A DNA stretch of 64,000 nt from Octopus sinensis (Eukaryota). This document shows, piece after piece, positions 3,065 to 63,898 of the stretch (positions within the stretch are counted from its first letter, which is position 1; each line of letters starts with the position of its first letter). The stretch lies in contig NC_043009.1 of assembly GCF_006345805.1 (NCBI RefSeq), positions 60,512,001 to 60,576,000 of the forward strand. Reading direction: 5' to 3'. The translations under genes and the position numbers were made by a program. Under the pieces are notes generated by a model that was given only the letters and a program-made list of their open reading frames with translations, did no database searches and was not told the DNA's origin.

Positions 3065-3235
3065 ATGACAGCATATGTAACCATGATGAAAGTCTACCAA
3101 CAGTCACCCCTACTCCAAAGATGGATAGAAAAACTAAAAGTAAACTGTTGAAAACTATGTCATTGAGTTTTATTTTGGGCTCTGCTTCTTCAAAAATTCA
3201 AAATGGTTCATTATTGAGTCTGCCTGACAATTTGG
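3065..3235 (+). CDS. Exon A (171 nt, phase 1-1) of an unidentified gene: xDSICNHDESLPTVTPTPKMDRKTKSKLLKTMSLSFILGSASSKIQNGSLLSLPDNL
   Basis: Pyrimidine tract plus GCAG acceptor, TTGG|GTAAGT donor, length divisible by 3, stop-free in phase 1, joins in frame to the exon at 7110. Confidence 0.65.
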
Positions 3236-7109: not shown

Positions 7110-7145
7110 ATGAACCCAAGTGCCGTTTATCAATTCCAGTTCAAG
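7110..7145 (+). CDS. Micro-exon B (36 nt, phase 1-1): DEPKCRLSIPVQ
   Basis: TTTTATTTTACAG acceptor, CAAG|GTAAGT donor, symmetric and open in the frame of exon A. Confidence 0.6.
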
Positions 7146-8759
7146 GTAAGTAGATCATTATTATTCACATTCTACAGTCTATAATCTCTCTAATACAAAG
7201 TGAGCAGATTTCAACAAGGGGAGTATAATATGCAGGGTATTTTTAGGGAGCTGTACCTCTGAAAAACTTAAACCTTGTGTATAATACGCACCCCTTCTCT
7301 AACTTGAGTCAAGGAGGTCTGTATAACGTCCTTGGTTTGTAAAACTGTATATGGTAACGTCCTTTATTATTATTGTATATATAACATAATGCAAACGTGT
7401 AGCTTTTTTGTGCATTTTGTTTGCAGAAAACAAAGAAATAACAGTAATGACGTTAATAAATGTTGCTTACTGCAAGTTATGGATGATCCTTTTATGACTT
7501 CATTGCTTTCAGGTTTAGCTTAAGGTATTTTTGTGTCCGACCTCACAAAATGCGTCTGAATAAACATTGCCGGACAGCAAATAGAGTCTCGGACATTGCT
7601 TAGAAAATATTATTCATTTTTAACCTCGTATATAGTATGCAGTTGGGATTTTGACCTTTAAACTTGGAGGGGAAAATGCGGATTATACTCGAGGATTTAC
7701 GGTATATATCTCTATCCTTATAAAAAAACGAAGTTTGTTTGTATGTTGACTGCTGAAAATGCTAATATTTGAGATTTTTCATGTCATTTCAATTAATTTT
7801 ACTTTTCTGCAGACAGCTGTACACTAATTTTATGAAAATGGAATGATGGGGGCTGAGTTAGTGGTATATTGGTTCCTATTTCTAGTGACCCATGTACCTT
7901 TTATTTCACCATAATGCTTTTTACAGATAAGGCATACCTACACAAAGGGCCACACCAAATTCTTTTCTTCATGACTTCAGAAAATGGATATTTTTAAGTA
8001 AAATTTTCTTCAACTATGCTTACAATAGTACAGATTCCAACTATATTGGAATTTGTTGTGAAAACCTTTATTTTGCTCCCAATAAAGCTGAATCGTTTGA
8101 AATTTCCAAAACTGCTCTCCTGACTTGTGGAGAATGATTTTCGCAACAAATTCTGGAATCTAAACCATCTGGAACATTTTTTATAAAATTTCATTTAAAA
8201 ATATCCATTTTTCAGAAAGTTAAGAAACAAACTCTGTGGGGCACAGTTGTGTAGTTATGACTATAAGAACACATTTATATATACATGCATGCAGGAAGGC
8301 TGACATTTTTACATATACATTCTCACATAAATATAACACACATGTATATTTATATATACCTACATTCCTATATACATTCCTATATTTTTAAACATTTATC
8401 TCAGATGTATACTTTTATAATATACTAGCATTATGACCTGACAACATGAGTACTGTCCAAATCTCCGACCAATCACATACAGCTAGCTGGCATTCAATTG
8501 ACGTATCAAGTTTCGGGCATTTTGATTGGATTTTGAATAGAAAATTCACAAAAACGTCACTTCTATTGATTTTTTAATGGCTTTGCGGGGTGACTGGGGA
8601 AATGTAAAGATGTGCATGACCACCCTTGGACAGTTTTGAATGACCATAGAAAGTACGAGCCCTCTAACTGAAAAATTGTGGATTTGTATAAAGGACACAC
8701 ACACACACACACACATTTTGCCATTTATATATATAGAGATTACAGTAATACTAACACAT

Positions 8760-9741: not shown

Positions 9742-9976
9742 GTGAAAGCAGATAAGTAAGGTGTGACAGTAGGCAGGGAAAGATAATGGGAAACGGAGGT
9801 GGTTTGGGGTAGGGAAGAAAAGTATCCGGGAAAGGTGGGGGTTGTAGTATGTGGCTATTCTGCTCCCAGGTTATAGAGAAGTGATGGATGTTTGGATATG
9901 AAATTTGAGGGGCAAAGGTTGACAGTGCAAAACCCCTTATATACAAGCATTGCCAAAGTGGTTTTAGGATATCAAA

Positions 9977-10207
9977 GGCGGCGAGCTGGCAGAAACGTTA
10001 GCTCGTCGGGCGAAATGCTTAGTGGTATTTCGTCTGCCGTTACGTTGTGAGTTCAAATTCCGCTGAGGTCGACTTTACCTTTCATCCTTTCGGGGTCGAT
10101 AAATTAAGTACCAGTTATGCACTGGGGTCGATGTAATCGACTTAATACCTATGTCTGTCCTTGTTTGTCCCTTCTATGTTTAGCCCCTTGTTGGTAATAA
10201 AGAAATG
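9977..10207 (+). mobile_element. SINE family A
   Basis: Full-length match to the family A consensus. Confidence 0.85.
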
Positions 10208-10436
10208 GGTTTTAGGATATCAATTCTACTGTGGTAGCCGAGTCTTTTTAAGAATGGCAAGGTGCCAGTTATCTCAATCCTTTTTCATCTCTTTTGTAAG
10301 GCTCAGCATTCTGAGATCAACCTTCAGTACTTCATTCCATGTCTTCCTCTTCCACAAGTTCCAGGAACACAGAAGCATAACCTGTATTTTATGCCTTATA
10401 TAATTTAAACTGTATTTCTCTATTTCATTTTTTCAG

Positions 10437-10466
10437 AGCATGGTAGCACAGCTGTATCAGCTTATG
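10437..10466 (+). CDS. Micro-exon C (30 nt, phase 1-1): EHGSTAVSAY
   Basis: TTTCATTTTTTCAG acceptor, TATG|GTATGT donor, open in frame; flanks are paralogous to exon D. Confidence 0.65.
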
Positions 10467-10519
10467 GTATGTATATCTTTTTCAACTAAACTATATACAG
10501 TCTGCCAAGTGAAACTATA

Positions 10520-11145
10520 GTCATAGCCAATGCTGGGGTCACATAACTGGCACCTGTGTCAATGGCATGTAAAAAGCACCCTTTGAATGTCGGGCCTCAC
10601 ACAGGTAATAAGTAACCAAGACCTTTAGTGATATGCCTATTTCTTTACTACCCACAAGGGGCTAAACACAGAGGGGGACAAACAAGGACAGATAAAGGGA
10701 TTAAGTCGATTACATTGACCCCAGTGCATAACTGGTACTTAATTTATTGACCCCGAAAGGATGAAAGGCAAAGTTGACCTCGGTGGAATTTGAACTCAGA
10801 ACGTAATGGCAGACGAAATACGGCTATGCATTTCGGCCGGCATGCTAACGTTTCTGCCAGATTGCCGCCTTTAGTGATATGCCATGCTTGAGAAGACTCA
10901 TCTAGCCAACTGAAATCATAAGTGTGACCGGTGGTGGTGTCATTCCACTGGCACTCATGCTAGTGGAACATAAAAAGCACCCATTACATTTTAGGAATGG
11001 TTTGCGTTAGGAAGGGCAATCAGCTGTAGAAACCATGCCAAATGAAATTGGGGCCTGATGCAGCTCTCTAGTTTACCAGTTTTAGTCAAACAGTCTAACC
11101 CATACCAGCATGGAAAGCAGGTACTAAATGATGATGATGATGAAG
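10520..11145 (+). mobile_element. Family D (RTE 3' UTR / V-domain-like) element, interrupted by a family A SINE
   Basis: GCGTTAGGAAGGGCAATCAGCTGTAGAAAC and an (ATG)n tail at about 11128-11145. Confidence 0.6.
10637..10870 (-). mobile_element. SINE family A with target-site duplication
   Basis: Full-length copy flanked by the direct repeat CTTTAGTGATATGCC at about 10623 and 10870. Confidence 0.9.
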
Positions 11146-11149
11146 ATGA

Positions 11150-12745
11150 GGAATCAGCCTGCATTTATCACTCGCCACCCCATAAGTGTAATGGGTGTTT
11201 TTACGTGTCACCTGCATAGATGCCATTTGCATGACATTGGTATCTACCACGGCTGCAGTTTTACTTGGCTTCATGGGTCTTCTTCTCGAGCACAGCATAA
11301 TGCCAAATGGACTCGGTCGTTGCTCTGTGATGGGTCTTCTCTCAAGCATAATATAATACCAAAGATCTCGGTCATTGCCTCTGTGAGGCCCAGCATTTGA
11401 AAGGAGCTCAACCACTTCTGCCTCTGTGAGGCTCAGCACTTGAATGGTGCTTTTCAAGTTCCACCTGCATGAGTGCTGGTTATGTCACACCAGCATCGGC
11501 CATGACTGTGATTTCACTTGGCTTGATGGGGATTTTTTCAAGCACAGCATATTGCCAAAGGTCTCGGCCACTAGTCATTGCCTCTGTGAGGTCCAAAGTT
11601 CAGAGATCATACTTCACCACTTCATCCCATGTCTTACTGGGTCTACCTGTACCACAGGTTCCCTCCACACTTAAGGATTGGCACTTCTTTACACAGTTAT
11701 TCTCGTCCATATGCATCACATGACCATAGCAGTGCATTCGTCTCTCTTGCACACCACTTCTGGTGCCTCTTATGCCTAACTTTTCTCTCAAAATGTTTAC
11801 TCTCTGTCATACATGCACACTGACATTGCACATCCAGCAAAGCATGCTGGCTTCATTTCTTTCAAGCCTATGCATGTCCTCAGCTGTCACAGCCCATGTT
11901 TCACTGCCATGTAGCATAGCTGTTCACACACAGGCATCATGCAATCTACCTTTCACTCTGAGAGAGAGGCCCTTTGTTGCCAGCAGAGGCAGAAGCTCTC
12001 TAAACTTTGCCCAAACTAATCTTTTTCTGACAGCTATGCTCACACAGCATCCACCTCTGCTATAACGTGATCACCTAGGTAACTGAAGTTATTTACTACC
12101 TCTAGCTTATCCCCATGGCAATTGATGGGGTTCTATTTTATGTACATTTTCGGTGTTTATTCTACCTGTGCATCTACCACACGCAAAAGCTATTTTCCCT
12201 GTTAACCTTCGTCTGATATTGCTGCACCTTTTATGTGTCAAGAGCTTACACTTGGTTCATCTTAGAGAGTTAATACCTACACCTTTTCTACACATAGAGC
12301 AGGGCTATCTACCTGAAGGGACTTGTAATTTGTCTGCCTTCCTACTTACTACAACTTTGGTTTTTGGTAGGTTAACTCTAAGGCCCTTCAACCTTGCTTC
12401 CACACCTGGAACATCTTCTCCAGTTCTGGTAATGATTCAGCTGTAAGAACAAAGTCATCAGTGTAGAGGAGTTCCCAGGGGCAGCCAGTCTTAAATTCTT
12501 CTGTTATTGCCTGTAGGACTATGATGAACAAGATGGGGCTGAGCATCGATCCTTAATGAACCCCTACTTCTACCCTAAATTTTTTGCCGTACACATCGCT
12601 AATCCTCACAATATTGGTAGCATCTCTGTACATAACTTGTACAGCTCTCACCAGCCACTCATCTAACCCTAGTTTCCACATTGTCCACCAGATAAGGAAT
12701 CGGAGGGATCCTGTTAAAAGCTTTCTACAAGTCCAGAATGTCAAC
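11150..12745 (-). mobile_element. RTE-clade LINE 3' half (degraded RT)
   Basis: GVQERRMHCYGHVMHMDE...GRPSKTWDEVVK and KLGLDEWLVRAVQVMYRDAT...FRVEVGVH; multiple frameshifts. Confidence 0.85.
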
Positions 12746-12945
12746 GAATTTTAGAGAACAATGACCAGTTTAATTGAATGTTTGAAAGAAAAGCAGAGAA
12801 TTTGCATTTTTTATTCTATAAGTAGCTTCAAAATTGGAAACATAATACTCATCTCTATAAATATTCAGGTAAACATATATATATGTATATATGTAGCATT
12901 GGATTTTTCTAACTTTACATATTTTTCTAATTTGTAAATATTCTC

Positions 12946-13335
12946 TCTTTTACTCTTTAACTTGTTTCAGTCATTTGACTGCGGCCATGCTGGAGCACCG
13001 CCTTTAGTCGAGCAAATCGACCCCGGGACTTATTCTTTGTAAGCCCAGTACTTATTCTATCGGACTCCTTTTGCCGAACCACTAAGTGACGGGGACGTAA
13101 ACACACCAGCATCGGTTGTCAAGCAATGCTAGGGGGACAAACACAGACACACAAACACACACACATACATATATATATATATACATATATATGACAGGCT
13201 TCTTTCAGTTTCCGTCTACCAAATCCACTCACAAGGCATTGGTCGGCCCGGGGCTATAGCAGAAGACACTTGCCCAAGATGCCACGCAGTGGGACTGAAC
13301 CCGGAACCATGTGGTTGTTTAGCAAGCTACTTACC
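12946..13335 (-). mobile_element. SINE family C
   Basis: Full-length; CORE-like TTGGGCAAGTGTCTT block and internal (TA)/(CA) tract. Confidence 0.9.
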
Positions 13336-13478
13336 ACACAGCCACTCCTGCACCTATTGTTTGTTTATGTAAAACATGAAATTGAAAGAAACCTGACTTT
13401 ACTTTTCAAAGCAAAACATCGAAATTACACAGTGTAGCCATAGACATATGACATATTTCTAAACACATGAACTCACAG

Positions 13479-13553
<75 letters not shown>

Positions 13554-13560
13554 AATTTTC

Positions 13561-13751
13561 ATAGGCACAGGAGTGGCTGTGTGGTAAGTAACTTGCTTAC
13601 CAACCACATGGTTCCGAGTTCAGTCACACTGCGTGACACCTTGGGCAAGTGTCTTCTACTATAGCCTTGGTAGGCTATAGTAGAAGACTGTAATGCCTTG
13701 TGAGTGGATTTGGTAGACGGAAACTGAAAGAAGCCCGTCGTATATATGTAT

Positions 13752-13821
<70 letters not shown>

Positions 13822-14057
13822 TATATATATGTGCGTGTGTACGTGTTTGTGTGTCTGTGTTTGTCCCCACCAAAATCGCTTGACAACAGATGCTGCTGTA
13901 TTTACATCATTGTAATATAACTGTTCAGCAAAAGCAAGTGATAGAATAAGCACTAGGCTTACAGAGAATAAGTCCTGGGGTCGATTTGCTCGACTAAAGG
14001 CAGGACTCCAGCATGGCCACAGTCAAATGACTGAAACAAGTAAAAGAGTAAAAGAGA
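13561..14057 (+). mobile_element. SINE family C
   Basis: Full-length with expanded internal (TA)n; head-to-head with 12946-13335. Confidence 0.85.
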
Positions 14058-14654
14058 ACCTTTTGTCTTCTTTCTGAGGAAGAAAAAGAAGCAAAAAGGA
14101 AAAAAAGAGAAAAAAAACGAAAATGCTTTCAGTGATGACTACACCACATTTCCAGGAGTGTCACTCATGGAAGATCTTCCAGGGACATTCTTCCACTTTT
14201 GAAGTTCCCATGCCACTCAAAACATTGCAGACAACCCACGGTCTCATCGCCATAGGCTTGTCAAAGTATGTTCAATGCCTCTGTGGCAGACTTGCCAATT
14301 TTAACACAAAATTTCCCATTGGCTTTTTTGCTCCTGTCCAAGACAAAATCACAGACTACAGCATATATGGAATCACAAAAACACAAATTTCACAACTTGA
14401 GAAATAAACACAGGAATATTACTTGACACATAGCCTCAAGAAGGTCACTACTAGCTCTGACAGTGCATGCAAGCATGTACTGCCATCTGTTGGCACACTA
14501 TAAAACAAGTCCAGGAACTTTTTTATACCACCTTATATGGAAACTGGTGATAAGATTGGAAATAACAATGTCATACACATATACACACACATTCACATAC
14601 ATACACTCATATATATATCATATTTTAAACTGTATTTCTTTCCTCCCTTTTCAG

Positions 14655-14684
14655 CGCTTGCTAGTTTAGAATCATCATTCTTTG
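14655..14684 (+). CDS. Micro-exon D (30 nt, phase 1-1): ALASLESSFF
   Basis: CTCCCTTTTCAG acceptor, TTTG|GTATGT donor, open in frame; paralogue of exon C. Confidence 0.65.
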
Positions 14685-14908
14685 GTATGTATATCTTTTT
14701 CAACAAAACTATATACAGTCTGTGTGTTAACATTAGCATTTCCTTTGATACATGTAATCAGCCTGAATTTATCACACATCACACTTTAAATAGAATTGAT
14801 ATTAGCAGAATTTGCCGACAAAAACTAAATCCTTATACACACACATGTATGTATGTATGTATGTATGTATATATTTAATATAAATTAAAAAGCAGAACAC
14901 AAAGGATA

Positions 14909-15003
14909 TCACGGTACACGTGTTTCAAGCTTCATAAACAATCCGTTATTACATCAGTGTATTAATGATATAAAAGATGGTTTAAAGCTGTCTTCAGCCG
15001 CAA
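14909..15003 (-). ncRNA. Type I hammerhead ribozyme motif (inverted copy)
   Basis: Reverse complement of 15330-15424; core CTGAAGA/GAAA and GUA site intact, but 10.1-11.1 is a C-U mismatch. Confidence 0.55.
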
Positions 15004-15329
15004 ACATTGTTAGTCCAAAGATTACATCACAATATAAAAAATATAAAAAGTACATGTAGTATTAGCCATTATAATAGGTTTATCATATCTCCCTGAAAAA
15101 GTATATTTGTATAATTTTCTAACTGTATAAATGTATAAAGATGCATGCTGATTGGTGATACAGTATGGGCAGATTTTCGAAATCCAATGAATCTTTATAC
15201 ATTTATACAGTTAGAAAATTATACAAATATACTTTTTCAGGGAGATATGATAAACCTATTATAATGGCTAATACTACATGTACATTTTATATTTTTTATA
15301 TTGTGATGTAATCTTTGGACTAACAATGT

Positions 15330-15424
15330 TTGCGGCTGAAGAGAGCTTTAAACCATCTTTTATATCATTAATACACTGATGTAATAACAGATTGTTTATG
15401 AAGCTTGAAACACGTGTACCGTGA
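15330..15424 (+). ncRNA. Type I hammerhead ribozyme motif, GUA site (predicted cleavage after 15418)
   Basis: Stem I TTGCGG/CCGTGA, core CTGAAGA (15336-42), long stem II GAGCTT-TAAAC...GTTTA-TG-AAGCTT, GAAA (15407-10), palindromic stem III ACACGTGT, GTA. Confidence 0.7.
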
Positions 15425-15639
15425 TATCCTTTGTGGGACTGAACCCGGAACCATGTGGTTGGTAAGCAAGCTACTTACCATACAGCCACTCCTGCACCTA
15501 TAAATGCGTCTATGCCCTTGTATTTAAGGATGCATATATATAATGGTAGTGATGTCTTTGAAAAGCTGAACTTCTAACATGGGATTATTTCCAAGTCAGC
15601 TGATTCCTTTCATTAATGCTTGGTCAAGGTCTCTCTCTT

Positions 15640-15803: not shown

Positions 15804-15834
15804 ATATCAGTTTGAATCATGAATTTTCCAGAAG
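15804..15834 (+). CDS. Micro-exon E (31 nt, phase 1-2): DISLNHEFSR
   Basis: TTTCACTCTTCAG acceptor, GAAG|GTAAGT donor; the only open frame is the one continuing from exon D. Confidence 0.5.
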
Positions 15835-18197: not shown

Positions 18198-18241
18198 TCA
18201 AGATGTCCTTTAGAAGGCCAGTCCTGTTTGGAATCTTTACG
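18198..18241 (+). CDS. Exon F (44 nt); frame ambiguous (SQDVL* after E, or VKMSFRRPVLFGIFT after D)
   Basis: Strong TTTTATTTTTCAG acceptor and ACG|GTATGT donor. Confidence 0.5.
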
Positions 18242-18360: not shown

Positions 18361-18419
18361 TTCATTTACCATATATATTGGAGCAATAAACTTTGGCAGC
18401 ATAACTCTATGATTTCAAG
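18361..18419 (+). CDS. Possible exon G (terminal or internal)
   Basis: TTTTGATTCTTCAG acceptor 119 nt after the F donor; weak AAG|GTACCA donor; frame depends on isoform. Confidence 0.3.
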
Positions 18420-20199: not shown

Positions 20200-21620
20200 A
20201 GCAGTCAATATTAGCCTATGTTCTTTTTAGCTTAATGACCCTGCTTTCAGATGTATATTATTTCTGCAGTTCTGTATTTTGCACACATTATGAACTCTCT
20301 GCAATCAAGAAATCAAGGGCTTAATACTCTCCCTGGTAATGTGAGTTGTGAATTGCTACTAACCCTGCAACCAAAAATCTGATTAAATGTGTTTTGCATT
20401 CATGATAGAAGAAATTACACTAGAGTTTTATTCCTAAGAACCCCAGAGACTGAAAGCATTTCCTGTTATTATACAGGATGAATTAGTTGTTAGACACAAA
20501 AAAAAACCCTCTTCAGAGTCATTCTCTTGAAGTTATTTATCCAGAAACTGCCTGCAACTATGAAAGATATTGCTCAATAATGGAGCCAATATTGAAGTTA
20601 CGGAACATTCTCCAAGAGAACTTCATATTCTGAACTGCTGTTCTTCAAAGTGAATGTCAACAAAGTTACAGCGCAAAATGAAGGCATTGACTCTGCAAAC
20701 CCAGGAAGTCTGGCAGAGAAGAGGGAAACCAAGACTTTAGTCATTCTGGTAGTTCTTACTGTAACACTAACATTACCAAAGAATGAGACAGTTTATGTTG
20801 GGACCATCGAATCTTTAGAGAAAGGACCCAACATAGCAATTCACTTTGTTGATCTATATTGAAACTTGCATCTAACATGACAAGTGAAAGAATCAGGAAT
20901 TAGCAGTGACCAATTTAGCTGGTCATGTACCCTTTAGTCACCCATTCTACATCAGTGACAAACACCAGCATAAATTTCTCATTGATACTAAAATTGATGT
21001 GAGTGTCTTTCCTGCCACACTAACTTCTGATAAGAAAAGCCTATGGCCCTTATTGCTTAAGGTTGTTCATTACTCTTCCATCACTACGGCAAGAAATTGT
21101 TAACACTAGATCTAGGAATGTGATGAATTTTTAACTGGATACGCTGCTTATTTATCCATTCCTATTCTCAGAGTTGATAATCTTTATCAATTGAAATTCA
21201 TTCATTGAGGTAAAACAACAGTGTCTTCTTGGTTCTTCAACCAACCTTATTGTTCAAATCCCAGTATTCCAGTCAGCTCCTACAACTAAATTTGAAGTTC
21301 TTTTACAAAAAATATATATTTAACATGTTGTGATTCTTATGAATTGAGAATAGGGCATAATGTTACCCACCATGTCTAAACTAAATGACCTCTGGTCAGA
21401 TCTCGATACTTGATCATCTAAATATAGCTAAACAGAAGTTCAATCACATCGTTGGACTTTGCTTTATTTGTCATTCTAGCACCAATTGCTCATCACTCTA
21501 CACATGGTTCTGGGAAAAACACCAGTTGAATGGTATTCTTGCAATGATTAACAGACACTTAATCCCAAAACATTCTTGAAAAGGTCTTGGTATAACCCAT
21601 CTTCAAGCCTGACATTTCTT
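20200..21620 (+). mobile_element. Ty3/Gypsy gag-protease-RT relic
   Basis: HKFLIDTKIDVSVFP (protease FLIDTGADVS-like) and LNIAKQKFNHIVGL...HSSTNCSSL (RT N-terminus-like); many stops. Confidence 0.6.
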
Positions 21621-24757: not shown

Positions 24758-26430
24758 TGTTGACACGTGACGCGATTTGTTTCTACTTATTTCGCGCCAC
24801 TGTCCCAGGCCAGCCAATCACGGCCTTTGGTTAAGGTCCCATTTCCTAGGCTCTGTTGAGTCACCTTACTTGTATATAAGGGAGTGTTTTCAGTATACTT
24901 GCGTCTTTGGTTCCAGTCCTTATAAAGGCTAACCTCTCTGACCACAGAGCTACTCAACATGTTCCAGTCACAGCGACAGACGATCAGCCGCGACGACGCT
25001 AATGTACACCCGCAACAGAAAACCAATTTCTATCTCCGCCACCGTCGTCACCATCATTGTACCAACTTCAAGTCGCCATCACCATCGTCCACTTCAGACA
25101 TGTACACACCAACTTCACAGATTCAACTCATACTGTTAGTGTGAAATTCTCACCACGTTGCAGTTGAAAGAATATCTGTATCAAGAGAAAAATAACCAAG
25201 CAAAACATGATATGAAGACGCTATAGTAAACCAAGCGACAGACATAACGTCATCGCCAACATCGTCTCTATCTACCAAGATTTAACTTGTACACAAGATA
25301 ACTATAGATTCAACTCATGCTGTTAGGTGAAAATCTCACCACGGAAAAACAGTTGCAGTATCATCATCATCATCATCATCGTTTAACGTCCGTTCTCCAT
25401 GCTAGCATGGGTTGGACGGTTCGACCGGGGATCTGGGAAGCCAGAAGGCTGCACCAGGCTCCAGTCTTATCTGGCAATGTTTCTACAGCTGGATGCCCTT
25501 CCTAACGCCAACCACTCCATGAGTGTAGTGGGTGCTTTTTACGTGCCACCCGCGCAGGTGCCAGAAGAGGCACAGAAGCCAGTCGAGGCGACGCTGGCAT
25601 CGGCCACGATTCGGATAGTGCTTTTTACGTACCACCAGTCCAGGGGTCCTGGCACCTGCCGGGTGCCAGTCATAGGATTGGTTCAATTTCGATTTCACTT
25701 GTCCCAACATGTCTTCGCAAGCAAAGGGGGTTGACATGGGTGCCTGTCGTCGGATGAGGTTCGATATCGACTTCGCTTGCCTCAACAGGTCTTTGTGTCC
25801 AAGGGGGGAAAGGCATGCATAAGTGGGCTGGGCTCACTTGTCCTGCCTGGTCTTCTCACGTACAGAATATTTCCAAAAGTCTCGGTCGCTGGTCATTTCC
25901 TCAGTGAGACCTAAAGTTCGAAGGTCGTGCTTCACCACCTCGTCCCAGGTTTTCCTGGGTCTACCTCTTCCACGGGTTCCCTCAACTGCTAGGGATTGGC
26001 ACTTTCTCACACACCTATCTTCATCCATTCTCGCCACATGACCATACCAGCGCAATCGTCTTTCTTGCACACCACAACTGATGCTTCTTAGGTACAACAT
26101 TTCTCTCAAGGTACTAACGCTCTGTCGAGTATGTACACTGACATTACACATCCATCGGAGCATACTGGCTTCATTCCTCGCGAGCTTACGCATGAAAGAA
26201 TATCTATATCAAGAGAAAGATAAGCACAACAAGTGATGCAACTAATCTCAGCTCCGAGACACAACATCTTGATATTGAACGCTTACACTTCGTGTACCTC
26301 ATGAACAGTAAATCAATTTCCATCATTAACTCTACATTCTGTACCTACTATGTCACACGTTTTCACTTGCTAGCACTCAAAACCTTCTAACATTAACACC
26401 GTTGTAAATAAAATCTTATCTTCTCTCAAA
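24758..26430 (+). mobile_element. Possible solo-LTR-like repeat split by an RTE insertion
   Basis: TG start, CCAAT (24814), TATATAAG (24873), AATAAA (26407); an internal duplicated block resumes after the LINE at about 26188. Confidence 0.3.
25360..26190 (-). mobile_element. 5'-truncated RTE LINE (RT C-terminus plus family D 3' UTR)
   Basis: ORF 25834..26193 RNEASMLRWMC...RLRWYGHVARM...GRGRPRKTWDEVV, followed by the V-like block and (ATG)n. Confidence 0.9.
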
Positions 26431-31653: not shown

Positions 31654-31884
31654 CTTTTAATTTTCATTCCTTTATTGATTTTGTATTAGTTTTAATTTTT
31701 TTATCCCTTGGTTCACACATTCACGCATACACACACACCTTTCTACACACTCATACATAGACACGTGCACGGCCACATCCACGGAAAGGCATATATGCAT
31801 ACACACAGACGGAGAAAGGAAATCGCCAACGATATATACATACATACATACATACATACATACATACATACATACATACATACA

Positions 31885-31931
<47 letters not shown>

Positions 31932-32144
31932 CATGTATATGTATAAATATACATGTATGTATATATCGTTGGCGATTTCCTTTCTCCGTCTGTGTGTATG
32001 CATATATGTCTTTCCGTGGATGTGGCCGTGCACATGTCTATGTATGAGTGTGTAGAAAGGTGTGTGTGTATGCGTGAATGTGTGAACCAAGGGATAAAAA
32101 AATTAAAACTAATACAAAATCAATAAAGGAATGAAAATTAAAAG
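31654..32144. repeat. Long palindrome with a (TACA)n/(TA)n centre
   Basis: Arms of about 190 bp are nearly perfectly complementary (ORFs 31708+ and 31743- begin with near-identical peptides). Confidence 0.9.
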
Positions 32145-42297: not shown

Positions 42298-42592
42298 GTA
42301 TATATATTTGTGTGTTGTGTGTGTTTAAATCATTTTTTGATACATTCTATTACATTTTCAGACATGTCATTGAGGCAGTTGCGAACCTCTTTCAGTCTCG
42401 TGCGGCAATACTTTGAAATCTGAGGCGTTAGTTGGCAAAGAGGCTGCCAACACTGTTACAACAAACAGGATATAATAGCTTTTGCAGAATTTGACCATGT
42501 TGTCACTTCTTGTCAACAGTGACAGATGATTAGATTTAATAATTAATGTCAGTACAAATAGAGAAGAAAACAAAAGTAGATAAAAACAACGT

Positions 42593-43129
42593 GTGCGTAT
42601 GTGTGTGTGCGTGCATGTGTGCGTGCGTGTGTGTGTGTGTGTGTGCGTATGTGTGTGTGTTTGCATGATTGTGTGTGTGTGCGTGTGGTGTGTGTTTTGT
42701 TGTTTTTGTGTGTGTGTTTGTGTGTGTGTGTTTGCGTGTGTGTGTGTTTGCGTGTTTGTGTGTGTGTGTGTTTGCGTGTGTGTGTGTTTGCGTGTTTGTG
42801 GTGTGTGTTTGCGTGTTTGTGTGTGTGCGTGTGTGTGTGTGTGTTTGCGTGTTTGTGTTGTGTGTGTGTGTTTGCGTGTTTGTGTGTGTGGTGTGTGTGT
42901 GGTGTTTGCGTGTTTGTGTGTGTGCGTGTGTGTGTGTGTGTTTGCGTGTTGGTGTGTGTGTGTGTGTGTGTGTTTGCGTGTTTGTGTGTGTGTGTGGCGT
43001 GTTTGTGGTGTGCGTGTGTGTGTGTGTGTTTGCGTGTTTGTGTGTGTGTGTTTGCGTGTTGTGTGGGTCGTGTGTGGCGTGTGTGTGTGTGTGTTTGCGT
43101 GTTTGTGTGTGTGTGTTTGCGTGTTTGTG

Positions 43130-43160
<31 letters not shown>

Positions 43161-44237
43161 TTGCGTGTTTGTGTGTGTGCGTGGTGTGTGTGTGTGTGTG
43201 TTTGCGTGTTGTGTGTGTGTGTTTGCGTGTTTGTGTGTGTGCGTGTGTGTGGTGTGTTTGCGTGTTTGTGTGTGTGGTGTTTGCGTGTTTGTGTGTGTGC
43301 GTGTGTGTGTGTGTGTGTTTGCGTGTTTGTTGTTGTGTGGTTTGCGTGTTTGTGTGTGTGTGCGTGTGTGTGTGGTTGTGTGTTTGCGTGTTTGTGTGTG
43401 TGTGTTTGCGTGTTTGTGTGTGTGCGTTGTGTGTGTGTGTGTGTGTGTGTTTGCGTGTTTGTGTGTGTGTGTTTCGTGTTGTGTGTGTGTGCGTGTGTGT
43501 GTGGTGTGTGTGTGTGTTTGCGTGTTTGTGTGTGTGCGTGTGTGTGTGTGGTGTGTGTGTGTTTGCGTGTTTGTGGTGTGTGTTTGCGTGTTTGTGTGTG
43601 TGCGTGTGTGTGTGTGTGTTTGCGTGTTTGTGTGTGGTGTGTGTGTTGTGTGTTTGGGCGTGTTTGTGTGTGTGCTGTGTGTGTGTGTGTTTGCGTTTTG
43701 GTGTGTGGTGTGTGTGTGTTTGCGTGTTTGTGTGTGTGTTTTGCGTGTTGTGTGTGGCGTGTGTGTGTGTGTGTTTGCGTGTTTGTGTGTGTGTGTTTGC
43801 GTGTTTGTGTGGTGTGCGTGTGCGTGTGTGTGTGTGTGTTTGCGTGTTTGTGTGTGTGTGTTTGCGTGTTTGTGTGTGTGCGTGTGTGTGTGTGTGGTGT
43901 TGTGTGTGCGTGTTTGTGTGGGGGTGTGTGTGCGTGTGTGTGTGTGTGTGTGTGTTTGCGTGTTTGTGTGTGTGTGTTTGCGTGTTTGTGTGTGTGCGTG
44001 TGGTGTGTGTGTGTTTGCGTGTTTGTGTGTGTGTGTTTGCGTGTTTGTTGGTGTGCGTGGTGTGTTGTGTGTTTGCGTGTTTGTGTGTGTGTGTTTGCGT
44101 GTTGTGTGTGTGGCGTGTGTGTGTTGTGGTGTGTGTTTGCGTGTTTGTGTGTGTGTTTGCGTGTTTGTGTGTGTGCGTGTGTGGTGTGTGTGTGTGTGTG
44201 TGTTTGCGTGTTGTGTGTGTGTGTTTGCGTGTTTGTG

Positions 44238-44268
<31 letters not shown>

Positions 44269-44480
44269 TTGCGTGTTTGTGTGTGTGCGTGTGTGTGTGT
44301 GTGTGTGTGGTGTTTTTGCGTTTTGTGTGTTTGTGTGTGGTTTGCGTGTTTGTGTGTGTGCGTGTGTGTGTGTGTGGGGTTGTTTTGCGTGGTTGTGTGG
44401 TGTGTTTGCGTGTTTGTGTGTGTGCGTGTGTGTGTGTGTGCATGTGTGTGTGTGTGTGTGTGTTTGCGTGTTCGTGTGTG
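42593..44480. repeat. 1.9-kb compound (GT)n array punctuated by TTTGCGTGTTT
   Basis: Visible; the source of the 600-700 aa HT/CV ORFs. Confidence 0.95.
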
Positions 44481-44809
44481 TAATCCTTCTCATATGGAAT
44501 ATGTTTGTTAAAAATCTTCTTTGTCACGAATGGCGAAAAAGCTGGCCTCTACAGGAAGTAAAGCTCTTTTCATTGAAATTTAGGAACAGCAACCGGGTGT
44601 TCGTCTGTGTATGATGCATGTATTGTTGTATGAATGTACGTGTGCAGGTGGGTAGGTTGATGGGTGGGTAGCTAGGTAAGTAGGTAGGCTGGTAGTTAAA
44701 TAGGTAGGTAGGTAGGTAGGTAGGTGGGTAGCTATGCGTATAACCAAATATCCTTTCTACTCTTGTACGAGGCCTTAAATTTATTGGGAGGATTGGCTAA
44801 ATAAGAGGA

Positions 44810-45130
44810 AAATACAGCTGGAAAATATGTGGAGACTTGAAGGTGATTGGAATGTTGATGGGAATGCAAACTGGGTTCACGAAATATTGTTGCTTTTTAT
44901 ACCAATGGGACAGTTGTGCAACTAACAAGCACTATGTGCAATCAGAGTGGCCCTTGCGAAAATCATACGAGCCAGGACTTTCTAGCGTGCAGAGTAAGCC
45001 ACTTTTAAACCCAGAAAATGTTTTTCTTCCCCCTCTTCACATAAAGCTTGGCCCCATGGAACAATTTGTGAAGACACTTGCCAGGAAAAACTCAGATGTC
45101 AGGAATGTCTGGAATGTTAGGAATTTCAGA
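44810..45130 (+). mobile_element. DNA transposase relic, probably Chapaev (CMC) type
   Basis: WKICGDLKVIGMLMGMQTGFTKYCCFLYQWDS...LPPLHIKLGPMEQFVK; family assignment from recalled motif similarity. Confidence 0.65.
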
Positions 45131-48100
45131 GATTAAAGACGGTGCCGACAAAGATCAAAGACGGTGCCGACAAAGATCAAAGAGTGTGCCGACATAGATC
45201 AAAGAGTGTGCCGACAAAGATCAAAGACGGTGCCGACAAAGATCAAAGACGGTGCCGACAGAGATCAAAGAGTGTGCCGACAAATATCAAAGACGGTGCC
45301 GACAGAGGTCAAAGAGTGTGCCGACAAAGATCAAAGACGGTGCCGACAGAGATCAAAGACGGTGCCGACAAAGATCAAAGAGTGTGCAAACAGAGATCAA
45401 AGAGTGTGCCGACAAAGATCAAAGACGGTGCCGACAGAGATCAAAGAGTGTGTCGACAAAGATCAAAAAGTGTGCCGACAAAGATCAAAGACGGTGCCGA
45501 CATAGATCAAAGTGTGCCGACAAAGATCAAAGATGGTGCAGACAGAGATCAAAGAGTGTGCCGACAAAGATCAAAGAATGTGCCGACAAAGATCAAAGAC
45601 GGTGCCGATATAGGTCAAAGAGTGTGCCGACAAAGATCAAAGACGGTGCCGACCGAGATCAAAGAGTGCGTCGACAAAGATCAAAGACGGTGCCGACAGA
45701 GATCAAAGAGTGTGCCGACAAAGATCAAAGAGTGTGCCGACCAAGATCAAAGACGGTCCAAACATAGATCAAAGAGTGTGCCGACAAAGATCAAAGACGG
45801 TGCCGACAGAGATCAAAGAGTGTTCCGACAAAGATCAAAGACGGTGCCGACAGAGATCAAAGAGTGTGCCGACAAAGATCAAAGACGGTGCCGACAGAGA
45901 TCAAAGAGTGTGCCGACAAAGATCAAAGAGTGTGCCGACATAGATAAAAAACGGTGCCGACAGAGATCAAAGAGTGTGCCGACAAAGATCAAAGACGGTG
46001 CAGACAGAGATCAAAGAGTGTGCCGACAAAGATCAAAGACGGTGCCGACAGAGTTCAAAGAGTCTGCCGACAAAGATCAAAGAGTGTGCCGACAAAGATC
46101 AAAGAGTGTGCCGACAAAGATCAAAGACGGTGCCGACAGAGATCAAATAGTGTGCCGACAAAGATCAAAGACGGTGCCGATAGAGATCAAAGAGTATGCC
46201 GACAAAGATCAAAGAGTGTGCCGACAAAGATCAAAGAGTGTGCCGACAAAGATCAAAGACGGTGCCGACAGAGATCAAAGAGTGTTCCGACAAAGATCAA
46301 AGACGGTGCCGACAGAGATCAAAGAGTGTGCCGACAAAGATCAAAGACGGTGCCGACAGAGATCAAAGAGTGTGCCGACAAAGATCAAAGAGTGTGTGCC
46401 GACATAGATAAAAAACGGTGCCGACATAGATCAAAGAGTGTGCCGACAAAGATCAAAGACGGTGCCGACAGAGATCAAAGCCGGTGCCGACAGAGATCAA
46501 AGACGGTGCCGACAGAGATCAAAGTGTGTGCCGACAAAGATCAAACACGGTGCCGACAGAGATCAAAGAGTGTGCGGACAAAGATCAAAGAGCGTGCCGT
46601 CAAAGATCAAAAGAGTGCCGACAAAGATCAAAGAGTTGTGCCGACAAAGATCAAAGAGCGTGCCGTCAAAGATCAAAGAGTGTGCCGACAGAGATCAAAG
46701 ACGGTGCCGACAAAGATCAAAGAGTGTGCCGAGAAAGATCAAAGACGGTGCCGACAAAGATCAAAGACGGTGCCGACAGAGATCAAAGAGTGTGCCGATA
46801 AAGAACAAAGACGGTGCCGACAAAGATCAAAGAGTGTGCCGACAAAGATCAAAGACGGTGCCGACAGAGATCAAAGAGTTGTGCCGTCAAAGATCAAAGA
46901 GTGTGCCGACAAAGATCAAAGACGGTGCCGACAGAGATCAAAGAGTGTGCCGACAAAGATCAAAGACGGTGCCGACAGAGATCAAAGTGTGTGCCGACAA
47001 AGATCAAAGACGGGGCCGACAGAGATCAAAAACGGTGCCGACAAAGATCAAAGAGTGTGCCGACAGAGATCAAAGAGTGTGCCGACAAAGATCAAAGACG
47101 GTGCCGACAGAGATCAAAGTGTGTGCCGACAAAGATCAAAGACGGGGCCGACAGAGATCAAAAACGGTGCCGACAAAGATCAAAGAGTGTGCCGACAGAG
47201 ATCAAAGAGTGTGCCGACAAAGATCAAAGACGGTGTCGACAGATATCAAAGAGTGTGTCGACAAAGATCAAAAAGTATGCCGACAAAGATCAAAGCCGGT
47301 GCCGACAGAGATCAAAGACCATGCCGACAAAGATCAAAGACGGTGCCGACATAGTTCAAAGTGTGTGCCGACAAAGATCAAAGACGTTGCCGACAAAGAT
47401 CAAATAGTGTGCCGACAAATATCAAAGCCGGTGCCGACAGAGATCAAAGACCATGCCGACAAAGATCAAAGACGGTGCCGACATAGATCAAAGAGTGTGC
47501 CGACAAAGATCAAAGAATGTGCCGACAAAGATCAAAGACGTTGCCGATATAGATCAAAGAGTGTGCCGACAAAGATCAAAGACGTTGCCGACAAAGATCA
47601 AAGAGTGTGCCGACAAAGATCAAAGAGTGTGCCGACAAAGATAAAAGAGTGTGCCGACAAAGATCAAATACGGTGCCAACAAAGATCAAAGACGGTGCCG
47701 ACAGAGATGAAAGAGTGTGCCGACAAAGATCAAAGACGGTGCCGACAGAGATCAAAGCCGGTGCCGACAGAGATCAAAGACGGTGCTGGCAGAGATCAAA
47801 GAATGTGCCAACAAAGATCAAACACGGTGCCGACAGAGATCAAAAAGTGTGCCGACAAAGATCAAAAAGTGTGCCGACAAATATCAAAGACGGTGCCGAC
47901 AGATATCAAAGACGGTGCCGACATAGATCAAAGAGTGTGCCGACAAAGACCAAAGACGGTGCCGATATAGATCAAAGAGTGTGCCGACAAAGATCAAAGA
48001 CGTTGCCGACAGAGATCAAAGAGTGTGCCGACAAAGATCAAAGATTGTGCCGACAAAGATAAAAGAGTGTGCCGACAAAGATCAAATACGGTGCCAATAA

Positions 48101-49025
48101 AGATCAAAGACGGTGTCGATAGAGATCAAAGGCGGTGCCGACAGAGGTGAAAGAGTGTGCCGACAAAGATCAAAGACGGTGCCGACAGAGATCAAAGCCG
48201 GTGCCGACAGAGATCAAAAACGGTGCCGGCAGAGATCAAAGTGTGTGCCGACAAAGATCAAACACGGTGCCGACAGAGATCAAAAAGTGTGCCGACAAAG
48301 ATCAAAGACGGTGCCGACAGATATCAAAGACGGTGCCGACATAGATCAAAGAGTGTGCCGACAAAGACCAAAGACGGTGCCGACAAAGATCAAAGACGGT
48401 GCCGACAGAGATCAAAGAGTGTGTCGACAAAGATCAAAGAGTATGCCAAGAAAGATCAAAGACGGTGCCGACAAAGATCAAAGACGGTGCCGACAGAGAT
48501 CAAAGAGTGTGCCGACAAAGATCAAAGACGGTGCCGACAAAGATCAAAGACGGTGCCGACAAAGATCAAAGAGTGTGCCGACAAAGATCAAAGACGGTGC
48601 CGACAGAGATCAAAGCCGGTGCCGACAGAGATCAAAGACGGTGCCGACAGAGATCAAAGTGTGTGCCGACAAAGATCAAACACGGTGCCGACAGAGATCA
48701 AAGACGGTGCCGATTAAGATCAAAGACGGTGCCGACAGATATCAAAGACGGTGCCGACATAGATCAAAGAATGTGCCGACAAAGACCAAAGACGGTGCCG
48801 ACAAAGATCAAAGACGTTGCCGACAGAGATCAAAGAGTGTGCCGACAAAGATCAAAGAGTGTGCCGAGAAAGATCAAAGACGGTGCCGACAAAGATCAAA
48901 GACGGTGCTGACAGAGATCAAAGAGTGTGCCGACAAAGATCAAAGATGGTGCCGACAATGATCAAAGACGGTGCCGCCAAAGATCAAAGACGGTGCCGAC
49001 AGATATCAAAGACGGTGCCAATAGA
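45127..49025 (+). repeat. 22-bp minisatellite GCCGACA(A/G)AGATCAAAGA(CG/GT)GT, roughly 175 units
   Basis: Contiguous tandem units without spacers; length about 3.9 kb. Confidence 0.97.
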
Positions 49026-62587: not shown

Positions 62588-63898
62588 CTGGGAAGCCAGG
62601 GGCTGCACCAGGCTCCAGTCTGATCAGGATGCCCTTCCTAACGCCAACCACTCCGTGAGTGTAGTGGGTGCTTTTTACGTGTCAGGGGAGTCTGGCATCG
62701 GCCATGATCGGTTGGTGCTTTTAACGTGCCACCGACACAGAAGCCAGTCGAGGCGGCGCTGGCATCGGCCACATTCGGATGGTGCTTTTTATGTGCCACC
62801 GACACAGAAGCCAGTCGAGGCGGCGCTGGCATCGGCCACGTTCGGATGGTGCTTTTTATGTGCCATCGGCACAGGTATCACAACTACTATTTCCATTGAT
62901 ATTTATTTCGATGTTCATGTACTTGACTCAATAGGTCTCCTCAAGCACAGCGGTATGTTCTGGTATCCAAGGTACTTTGAATGGGCAGGGCTATGCGGGA
63001 CTGGTGCAGGAAGCAGCCCGGGTCTTTGCAGTCTCAGCATATCTCCAGAGATCTTGGTCCTTCGTCATTGCCTCTGTGAGGCCCAACCATCTGAGGTCAC
63101 GCTTGACTACCTCATCCCATGTCTTCCTGGGTCTTCCTCTCCCCCTGATACCTTCAACTGTTTGGGAGCGGCACTTCTTCACACATCTCTCCTCATCCAT
63201 CCGCAGTACATGACCATACCATCGCAAGCGTTGCTCTTGCACACCACATCTGATGCTTCGTATGTCCAGCATTTCTCTCAGGGTGCTTACTCTCTGTCGT
63301 GCGCGCACACTGACATTACACATCCAGCGGATCATGCTAGCTTCATTCCTTTCGAGTCTACGCATGTCCTCTGCAGTCACAGCCCATGTTTCCCTACCGT
63401 GAAGCATGGCAGTTCGCACACATGCATCATACAATCTACCTTTCACTCTGAGCGAGAGACCCTTTGTCGCCAGTAGGGGTAGGAGCTTTCTAAACTTTGC
63501 CCAGGCTATTCGTATTCTAGTGGTGACACTCTCTGAGCATCCACCTCCACTACTAACTTGGTCACCCAGGTAGCGGAAACTATCAACTACTTCTAGTTTC
63601 TCCCCCTGGAGTGTGATGGGATCTGTTTTCTGAGTATCTGTGGTGTCTATTGTCCCTGTGCATCTGCCGCACATGAAAGCTATCTTATCAGTTAATTTCC
63701 CTTTGATGTTGCTGCACCTCTTATGCGTCCATAGCTTACACTGGGTACATCTTATGGAGTTTCTACCTACACCTTCCTACAGATCGAGCAGGGCCACCTG
63801 CCCGAGAGTGTGTGTGCTGAGTTCGCCTTTCTGCTTACTATAATTTTGGTCTTTGCTACGTTTACTGTAAGGCCCTTTGATTCTAACCCTTGCTTCCA
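62588..63898 (-). mobile_element. RTE LINE 3' part (RT plus family D 3' UTR), cut by the assembly gap
   Basis: 227-aa ORF 62991..63674 with LEVVDSFRYLGD...KGRLYDACVRTAMLHG...RLRWYGHV...GRPRKTW. Confidence 0.92.

Follow-up and report, generated by a model that had tools for sequence, protein, structure and literature searches.

Two candidate micro-exons, C and D, occupy a repeat-rich, octopus-like intron at a distance of 4.2 kb from each other, and several observations suggest that they derive from an old tandem duplication of a cassette micro-exon unit whose splice-proximal blocks are constrained and whose exon is drifting. We favor this explanation tentatively, and we infer the splicing of C and D solely from the points at which conservation starts and stops along the two units, which are homologous throughout. 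Candidate micro-exon C (10437–10466, plus strand) and candidate micro-exon D (14655–14684, plus strand) are each 30 nt long and of phase 1-1, and would encode (E)HGSTAVSAY and (A)LASLESSFF, respectively. The exon bodies agree at 16 of 30 nt, as the first-pass annotation of this locus had reported, and the probability of 16 or more matches between random 30-mers from the window (the whole 64-kb stretch of DNA that was analyzed) is 8e-4. Thus, the two exons are homologous though strongly diverged. The peptides EHGSTAVSAY and ALASLESSFF, which have 2 of 10 residues in common, were read correctly in that annotation, a reading valid only with a G donated by the preceding exon; the final base is G in both exon C and the candidate exon at 7110–7145. 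The phase-1 frame is the sole open frame of D. It had also been pointed out that length, phase, and an open frame are retained. This is true as a fact, and both exons are 30 nt long despite an indel in the adjoining pyrimidine tract, but the open frame is uninformative because 85% of random 30-mer pairs from the window share one by chance (P = 0.85).

Similarity between the units is concentrated in four intronic blocks. The first, I1, is TTTAAACTGTATTTCT, located between 33 and 18 nt 5' of exon C (10404–10419, plus strand) and found as an exact copy upstream of D (14624–14639, plus strand); at up to two mismatches, it occurs at these two sites only in the 64-kb window. It is followed in each copy by a pyrimidine tract and the acceptor (10420–10436 in C and 14640–14654 in D, both plus strand). 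The acceptor block, I2 (10430–10436 in C), is TTTTCAG and is identical at 7 of 7 positions directly 5' of both exons, which together with the exact 16-mer of I1 bears out the earlier statement that the two copies share acceptor sequence. The pyrimidine tract has diverged roughly as far as the exon (CTATTTCATT in C versus TTCCTCCC in D, where 3 of 10 columns agree and there is a 2-nt indel), and despite this divergence both versions remain pyrimidine-rich and free of AG. The third block, I3, comprises the donor GTATGT and 32 further intronic nt (10467–10504 in C and 14685–14722 in D, both plus strand); we confirm the 37/38 identity already described over the 38 nt after each donor, the lone difference being T/A at +21. 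The fourth, I4 (AATCAGCCTGNATTTATCAC), is 19/20 identical between the copies and had been missed by the first-pass annotation, as had both the transposon fragments on either side of the C copy and the divergence of the pyrimidine tract. In D, I4 begins 72 nt from the donor (72 to 91 nt past it; 14756–14775, plus strand), and in C, where it reads AATCAGCCTGCATTTATCAC (11152–11171, plus strand), it is a nontransposon remnant between two transposon insertions, 686 nt from the donor. These are the only I4 sites in the window, with a local alignment score of 22 versus 9.6 ± 1.3 in shuffles.

Thus, from 5' to 3', conservation covers 16 nt around −30, then the acceptor TTTTCAG, then the donor with the 32 nt that follow it, and finally 20 nt around +72. 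The four blocks combined are 79/81 identical (98%), versus about 30–53% for the pyrimidine tract and exon, and I1, I2, and I3 together have 1 mismatch in 61 positions where the exon has 14 in 30 (Fisher p=1.6e-7). Divergence along the unit is therefore sharply bimodal, and the boundaries of conservation fall exactly after the AG of the acceptor and before the GT of the donor in both copies. As read from the sequence, 7 nt of I1 are a perfect inverted match to 7 nt at the 3' end of I3. Neither a 7-bp stem between I1 and I3 nor a hairpin at the I3 donor (UGUAUAU/AUAUACA) performed better than shuffles (hairpin z −0.8 to −1.6), and both are therefore treated as no more than leads.

The transposons around copy C bear on the age of the duplication. 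The gap between I3 and I4 is 33 nt in D and is filled in C by a 647-bp transposon (10505–11151, minus strand) that carries a nested SINE. The first base of this transposon is exactly +39 of C and its (GAT)n end is at 11151; its segment 10505–10605 matches 11421–11521 in reverse complement at 72% identity, which makes this, the older of the two insertions, only 72% identical to its best relative in the window. The SINE (10638–10867, 230 bp) is flanked by a 16-bp target-site duplication (10622–10637 and 10868–10883). Because these elements entered between conserved blocks after the duplication, the duplication is old and, since I3 and I4 were split by both, older than at least two insertion events, an age argument that draws on few sites and one transposon identity figure. 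The transposons in copy C reach the block edges and the I3–I4 gap but never the interior of a block. We considered I4 as a piece of the neighboring transposon and rejected this on alignment statistics, given that neither I4 nor the D flank shows similarity to the adjacent transposon family (z ~0).

The same observations bear on the hypothesis that the duplication is recent, that flank identity merely reflects youth, and that the peptide has since changed quickly under diversifying selection. The first-pass annotation had offered such selection as one of two alternatives, the other being a strongly constrained intronic splicing element. Raw divergence of the exons is 47% and NG86 gives a dN of 0.86 versus a dS of 0.54 over 9 codons; 8 of 10 residues differ, as do 7 of 9 second codon positions compared with 3 of 9 first and 3 of 9 third positions, and neighboring candidate exons are symmetric and of phase 1-1, as in micro-exon genes. 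However, dS is high too, and nine codons provide no statistical power. The noncoding pyrimidine tract has diverged as far as the exon and contains an indel, and the copies must have been separate for long because the transposon with its nested SINE lies between I3 and I4 in C and is absent from D. Furthermore, no gene model for a secreted protein was found, and a speculative 73-aa ORF lacks a Pfam match. We therefore consider recent duplication with diversifying selection improbable. Of the two alternatives, the constrained intronic element is favored, because the noncoding tract diverged like the exon; given this and the age of the duplication, exon divergence does not need positive selection.

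Under the explanation that we favor, the four blocks would be cis-acting splicing elements retained in both copies by purifying selection. I1 may serve as a branch region, and further candidate roles are those of a 3' splice site, of a 5' splice site in which U1 pairing is extended, and of platforms for intronic enhancers or silencers. Because a 30-nt exon offers insufficient space for exonic enhancers, C and D would rely on these intronic blocks for recognition, and the exon body, of which length alone would be required, would have drifted at a near-neutral rate. Each exon could be included or skipped independently with the frame intact, since both are symmetric (30 nt, phase 1-1). Mutagenesis has shown that microexon regulation resides chiefly in the flanking introns, on both the 3' and 5' sides (bioRxiv 10.1101/2024.09.17.613571). 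We recognized no known regulator motif. Against this explanation, an identity of 37/38 over 38 nt exceeds that typical of intronic enhancers, and the lack of protein matches described below also counts against it.

An identity of 79/81 across the blocks is indeed above what most functional constraint yields, and could instead point to concerted evolution, in which short conversion events, occurring repeatedly between C and D, homogenize the flanks, and any event extending into the exon is eliminated or does not arise. The copies are in tandem and in the same orientation, 4.2 kb apart. Gene conversion tracts are normally contiguous and longer, however, and here at least three separate tracts of 16–38 nt would be required, each ending precisely where the pyrimidine tract or a splice junction lies, with one of them 686 nt off across the transposon in C. 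We regard gene conversion as quite improbable.

It is also conceivable, though unlikely, that C and D are not exons at all and that the unit is a low-copy noncoding duplicated element whose likeness to splice sites is coincidental. One possibility is a module of regulatory DNA, another a small MITE-like element bounded by imperfect inverted repeats of 9 bp (AAACTGTAT ... ATACAGTCT). The uninformative open frame agrees with this, as do the inverted match between I1 and the 3' end of I3, the 51% repeat content of the window, and the lack of any match to an annotated protein: the candidate peptides, joined, in phase 1 and in every other open frame, are absent from a 5.8-billion-protein database. 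This database contains Octopus bimaculoides and O. vulgaris proteins (transposon ORF control), and an exact look-up of the control transposon ORF gave no match. A search with the ORF through D found no relative among 1.84 billion representatives and returned one spurious bacterial repeat protein. Several lines of evidence nevertheless argue for exons. In both copies, the edges of conservation sit exactly at the AG and GT, the stretch upstream has diverged and is still a pyrimidine tract without AG, and the 30-nt length is unchanged beside a tract that bears an indel. Neither copy is flanked by a target-site duplication, I4 lies outside the putative element, and transposon copies normally diverge evenly rather than as a mosaic. 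Additionally, pattern search, blastn, and nhmmer find two copies in the 64-kb window, adjacent to each other, and in a self-comparison of the window the unit is masked solely through its partner copy. Within the window the unit is therefore not a dispersed repeat, a possibility that the first-pass annotation had raised for the shared flanks. An exact scan of JGI metagenome contigs with I3 gave 0 matches.

If C and D are spliced, the locus is a natural experiment that parts the needs of micro-exon recognition (four blocks, 98% identical) from the peptide encoded, and the insertions around copy C would delimit the smallest set of required elements with nearly single-base precision. It would provide a testable map of the signals that define micro-exons in cephalopods, whose splicing regulation is far less studied than their RNA editing, and would show how a protein can gain new, unconstrained peptide segments through tandem duplication. 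If they are not spliced, what remains is a low-copy duplication with an odd mosaic pattern and little importance.

The suggestion that C and D form a mutually exclusive pair found no support. Exclusivity would arise either from competing RNA structures, with the duplicated blocks as part of a stem, or from incompatible spliceosomes. C and D are tandem duplicate exons of equal length and phase, their duplicated intronic blocks could serve as selector sequences as in a published model (PMC6071210), and the ATATCTTTT in I3 departs from the U12-type donor consensus at a single position. The best duplexes formed by I1 and I3 on the plus strand from 1 to 42 kb are nevertheless microsatellites, no better than those of shuffled queries, so that no docking complement is apparent there. 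The U12-like donor motif has 46 occurrences versus 37 expected, that is, chance level, no U12 branch consensus lies near an acceptor downstream of D on the plus strand, and C and D have identical GT-AG, U2-type splice sites. The intron between them is 4188 nt, so that there is no steric block, and because both exons are multiples of three the frame is kept with both or neither. Known mutually exclusive clusters show stronger conservation in their exons than in their introns, which are only faintly alike (PMC6071210); C and D show the reverse, and their peptides share 2 of 10 residues. Mutual exclusivity is thus very improbable.

Candidate exons in the neighborhood are compatible with C and D in phase. 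In a scan for splice signals the top three plus-strand candidates lie within 8.7 kb and D lies among them, its score being just under the donor cut-off. The best is a 31-nt candidate at 15804–15834 (plus strand; CTCTTCAG/...AAG/GTAAGT) that carries on the phase-1 frame from D, the second is a 36-nt candidate of phase 1-1 at 7110–7145 (plus strand; TTTTACAG/...AAG/GTAAGT), and C ranks third. The 7110 candidate has weak nhmmer similarity to a C/D model and contains TACAGTCT at +28 to +35, which I3 has at +30 to +37. Farther downstream, a 44-nt candidate (18198–18241, plus strand) is flanked by sequences akin to I1 (TTTAAATTTTATTTTT) and to the first part of I3 (GGTATGTATAT) and contains an ATG followed by a signal-peptide-like MSFRRPVLFGIFT; it is possibly an older paralog, with a similarity that is weak and AT-rich. 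A speculative first exon at 3157–3235 (MSLSFILGSASS...) that ends in phase 1 at TGG/GTAAGT was picked out by sequence pattern alone, and Pfam returned no match for it. Ab initio scans yielded nothing convincing as normal-sized exons or as a signal-peptide first exon, and a candidate at 20251–20340 was discarded as it sits in an apparent retroelement remnant. The whole window has no Rfam hits at gathering score and no tRNA genes (ARAGORN), and searches of the literature on octopus microexons returned nothing on this locus.

A broader reading, to which we give only a slim chance, is that the blocks are a portable exon-definition cassette that acts independently of exon sequence and makes the spliceosome recognize any 30 nt placed between them. 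Its elements would be fixed, anchored at the splice sites, and possibly bound by a cephalopod-specific factor, and the weaker I1- and I3-like motifs at 7110 and 18198 would be older members of the series. Each duplication of such a cassette could create a new stretch of peptide with immediate freedom to diverge.

Comparison with known systems shows partial likeness to several. Like neuronal microexons of the SRRM3/4 type, C and D are very short, with regulatory information mainly in the adjoining introns on both sides and with flanks conserved beyond expectation. Unlike them, C and D at 30 nt exceed the 3–27 nt range and fit only looser definitions (<=51 nt), their conservation is between paralogs in one gene and not between orthologs, and their exon bodies are not conserved, in contrast to the strong sequence conservation of classical microexons. 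The SRRM3/4 enhancer is bipartite, UCUCUC...UGC (bioRxiv 10.1101/2024.09.17.613571), but C and D lack a UGC between the pyrimidine tract and AG. In the last 93 nt upstream, TGC occurs once in C, at about −46, and not at all in D, and the interval from I1 to the AG is free of it in both copies. With mutually exclusive clusters such as Dscam1, ATE1, and 14-3-3 zeta, C and D share the tandem duplication of an exon with adjacent intron, equal length and phase, and intronic elements common to the copies; they differ in the inverted gradient and in that no docking site (plus strand, 1–42 kb) or other mechanism of exclusivity was found.

In the micro-exon genes (MEGs) of schistosomes, symmetric exons of 6–36 nt form most of the coding sequence, the first exon encodes a signal peptide, and the product is secreted. 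The run of short symmetric candidate exons here (36, 30, and 30 nt, phase 1-1), which could be freely combined and would encode highly divergent peptide segments, is similar, but there are only three symmetric candidates, the next being 31 nt, and a signal-peptide first exon is speculative. Introns that are more conserved than exons are also found in snoRNA host genes and in toxin genes (conotoxins, snake PLA2). The C/D blocks, however, are 16–38 nt, abut splice sites, are too short for a snoRNA, and have no Rfam match, and compared with recently duplicated toxin genes there is no toxin-like product here and the intronic pyrimidine tract has diverged.

Exon C is, in addition, bracketed by an inverted SINE pair, with a left arm at 9974–10209 (no strand assigned) and a right arm at 10636–10872. 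The arms are complementary over 198 nt at 90% and over a further 41 nt at 88%, and the ~430 nt between them contain I1, exon C, and I3.

The two candidate micro-exons, C (10437-10466) and D (14655-14684), are each 30 nt long on the + strand, with TTTTCAG immediately upstream and GTATGT immediately downstream. Their exon bodies are identical at 16/30 positions, which exceeds chance (P=8e-4 vs. random 30-mers drawn from the window), and thus they are homologous though heavily diverged. The 38-mers that follow the two donors (I3) match at 37/38 positions, and the 16-mer upstream of each exon, TTTAAACTGTATTTCT (I1), is present as exact copies starting at 10404 and 14624. Mismatches amount to 14/30 in the exon versus 1/61 in the three flank blocks (Fisher p=1.6e-7). 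These coordinates and counts agree with the first-pass annotation; the pattern is real, statistically strong, and wider than was seen there. A previously unnoticed fourth block, I4 (AATCAGCCTG[C/A]ATTTATCAC), lies on the + strand 72 nt past the D donor (14756-14775) and 686 nt past the C donor (11152-11171). At up to 3 mismatches these are its only two sites in the window, where 0.03 are expected, and its local alignment score is 22 versus 9.6±1.3 for shuffles. Furthermore, the stretch from I1 to TTTTCAG (CTATTTCATT in C, TTCCTCCC in D) is identical in only 3/10 columns and has a 2-nt indel, a divergence that matches that of the exon, yet it is pyrimidine-only and AG-free in both copies. Identity within the unit falls into two classes, 79/81 for the four blocks and about 30-53% for the exon and pyrimidine tract, and outside the units no alignment between the copies is possible. 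It had been considered that the shared flanks might prove to be a dispersed repeat. Within the window they occur in two copies only, no third copy of the unit was found in the 64 kb by pattern search, short-word blastn, or an nhmmer profile, and no likeness of I4 or the D flank to the adjacent transposon family was found.

The simplest account of these data would be an old duplication after which the four blocks came under strong purifying selection and the exon body under little or none. Of the two explanations offered in the first-pass annotation, the two-class identity favors a constrained intronic splicing element over diversifying selection on the peptide. A recent duplication in which the peptide was then selected leaves the diverged non-coding pyrimidine tract unexplained. 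Gene conversion could in principle keep the flank blocks alike, but it would require at least three tracts of 16-38 nt each, every one halting at a splice junction. NG86 codon figures over nine codons (dN 0.86, dS 0.54; differences 3/7/3 by codon position) do not change the old-duplication account. Transposon sequence crowds copy C on both sides. The upstream fragment stops ~40-55 nt before I1, and a 647-bp insertion starts exactly at +39, right after the 38-mer, and stops at 11151, right before I4. This insertion, the older part of which is 72% identical to its best relative within the window, holds a younger nested SINE whose 16-bp target-site duplication is perfect. Because I4 lies beyond the transposon in C and only 33 nt from I3 in D, the duplication is older than both the insertion and the nested SINE. 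The insertion in C also sets the 3' edge of the 38-nt element, and thus the functional element may reach farther.

The usual exonic enhancers do not fit inside a 30-nt exon. A mutagenesis study found that micro-exon inclusion is encoded chiefly in both flanking introns (bioRxiv 10.1101/2024.09.17.613571). Given both the small size of the exons and this published precedent, we read the blocks as splicing elements. I1 would serve as branch region or upstream enhancer, TTTTCAG as the 3' splice site, and the first ~8 nt of I3 (GUAUGUAU) as a 5' splice site that pairs more extensively with U1. The remainder of I3, together with I4, might provide intronic regulator platforms. No known regulator motifs were recognised in the blocks, and SRRM4-type UGC is absent at C and D. 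I3 contains a hairpin, and I1 and I3 can form a 7-bp stem, but neither structure is statistically distinguishable from shuffles. The best explanation draws on known biology, in which micro-exons rely on conserved flanking intron and exons originate by tandem duplication; what is unusual is the 98% identity of paralogous flanks around an apparently unconstrained exon body.

It was also suggested that C and D might form a mutually exclusive pair. This finds no support, since the intron between them is 4188 nt long and both exons are multiples of three. Their splice sites are identical and U2-type, with U12-like motifs at chance frequency. Known mutually exclusive clusters show a conservation gradient opposite to that of C and D (PMC6071210). 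No docking complement was found on the + strand over 1-42 kb, where the best duplexes of I3 and I1 were with microsatellites and did not exceed those of shuffled queries. Both exons are bracketed by inverted SINE copies, and dsRNA could loop them out; inverted SINE pairs are common in repeat-rich introns, and we therefore give loop-out no weight. The pair around C (9974-10209 / 10636-10872, opposite orientation; 198 nt at 90% and 41 nt at 88% complementarity) has arms ~430 nt apart that enclose the exon and its islands, and a duplex in the pre-mRNA could loop exon C out or be an RNA-editing substrate. The inverted pair around D is shorter (13558-13629 / 15433-15504; 72 nt, 90%).

Several features suggest that C and D are probably spliced: in each copy conservation flips exactly at the AG and GT junctions, the sequence that diverged upstream of the exon is still a clean pyrimidine tract, and exon length is kept at 30 nt. 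Retention of an open frame, also remarked on earlier, is true of both copies but is uninformative given a chance expectation of 85%. The top three + strand candidates in a simple splice-signal scan of the window were 15804-15834, 7110-7145, and C, with D just under the donor cut-off; all four lie on the same strand within 8.7 kb, and a single frame is open throughout the chain. Counting against exon status, the candidate peptides, in every open frame, are absent from the protein database, including two annotated octopus proteomes, and no ORF relatives were found among 1.84 billion representatives. C and D may be unannotated coding exons, or they could be non-coding, within a 5' UTR or a long non-coding RNA.

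Two neighbouring candidates whose flanks resemble those of C and D also speak for exon status. The 36-nt candidate micro-exon at 7110-7145 has consensus splice sites, TAAAC at about -36, and TACAGTCT at +28..+35 (7173-7180), a motif found at +30..+37 in the C/D 38-mer; the chance probability of this placement is roughly estimated at ~0.01. The other + strand candidate, of 44 nt (18198-18241), has an upstream flank, TTTAAATTTTATTTTTCAG, that resembles I1 and a donor, ACG/GTATGTATAT, that resembles the start of I3, although the likeness is weak and AT-rich. Inside it, an ATG in good context precedes the signal-peptide-like MSFRRPVLFGIFT, and AATAAA occurs downstream at 18385. A gene may have its first coding exon here, in which case the ATG would make C and D part of that gene's 5' UTR; alternatively, the candidate could be an older C/D paralogue. 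Purely speculatively, a 79-nt open + strand stretch at 3157-3235 (ATG...TTG G/GTAAGT, MSLSFILGSASSKIQNGSLLSLPDNL, phase 1 end) joined to the 7110-C-D-15804-18198 chain could yield a 73-aa ORF ending at TAG 18211-18213, for which no Pfam match was found.

The window is ~40% G+C, half of it is repeated within the window itself, and no normal-sized protein-coding exon was recognised across the 64 kb. It resembles a single very long intron, or several, filled with SINEs, LINE fragments, and microsatellites. Reverse-transcriptase fragments from non-LTR retrotransposons, all on the - strand, lie at ~780-1130, 12390-12550, 25834-26193, and 62991-63674, two of them with weak Pfam RVT_1 matches under the curated cut-off; the best named relatives of the ORF at 62991-63674 are uncharacterised proteins in Octopus bimaculoides (74-90%, part length) and O. 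vulgaris, matches that assign the window to an octopod or a near relative. The translation of 20938-21060 holds FLIDTKIDVSVFP, which recalls the aspartic-protease motif of retroelements, and the sequence around it, 20.5-22.5 kb, has the look of an LTR-type element in decay, with no Pfam match around 20938-21060. About 200 nt downstream of D, a 249-nt inverted repeat (14898-15146 / 15187-15435; 98% complementary, 40-nt spacer) is a foldback-type element. At 31708-32090, opposite-strand ORFs open with identical 27 residues, which implies that an inverted repeat forms a palindrome with its centre near 31900. The 1.9-kb stretch at 42591-44481 is a degenerate array of GT/CA dinucleotides that gives rise to pseudo-ORFs of 600-700 aa on both strands. 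Finally, 45130-49019 (3.9 kb) is a tandem array that repeats every 22 nt (consensus AGATCAAAGACGGTGCCGACAA, ~177 copies, 84% match) and has strong purine/GC skew and long stop-free runs in all three + frames, which we take to be a satellite and not a gene.
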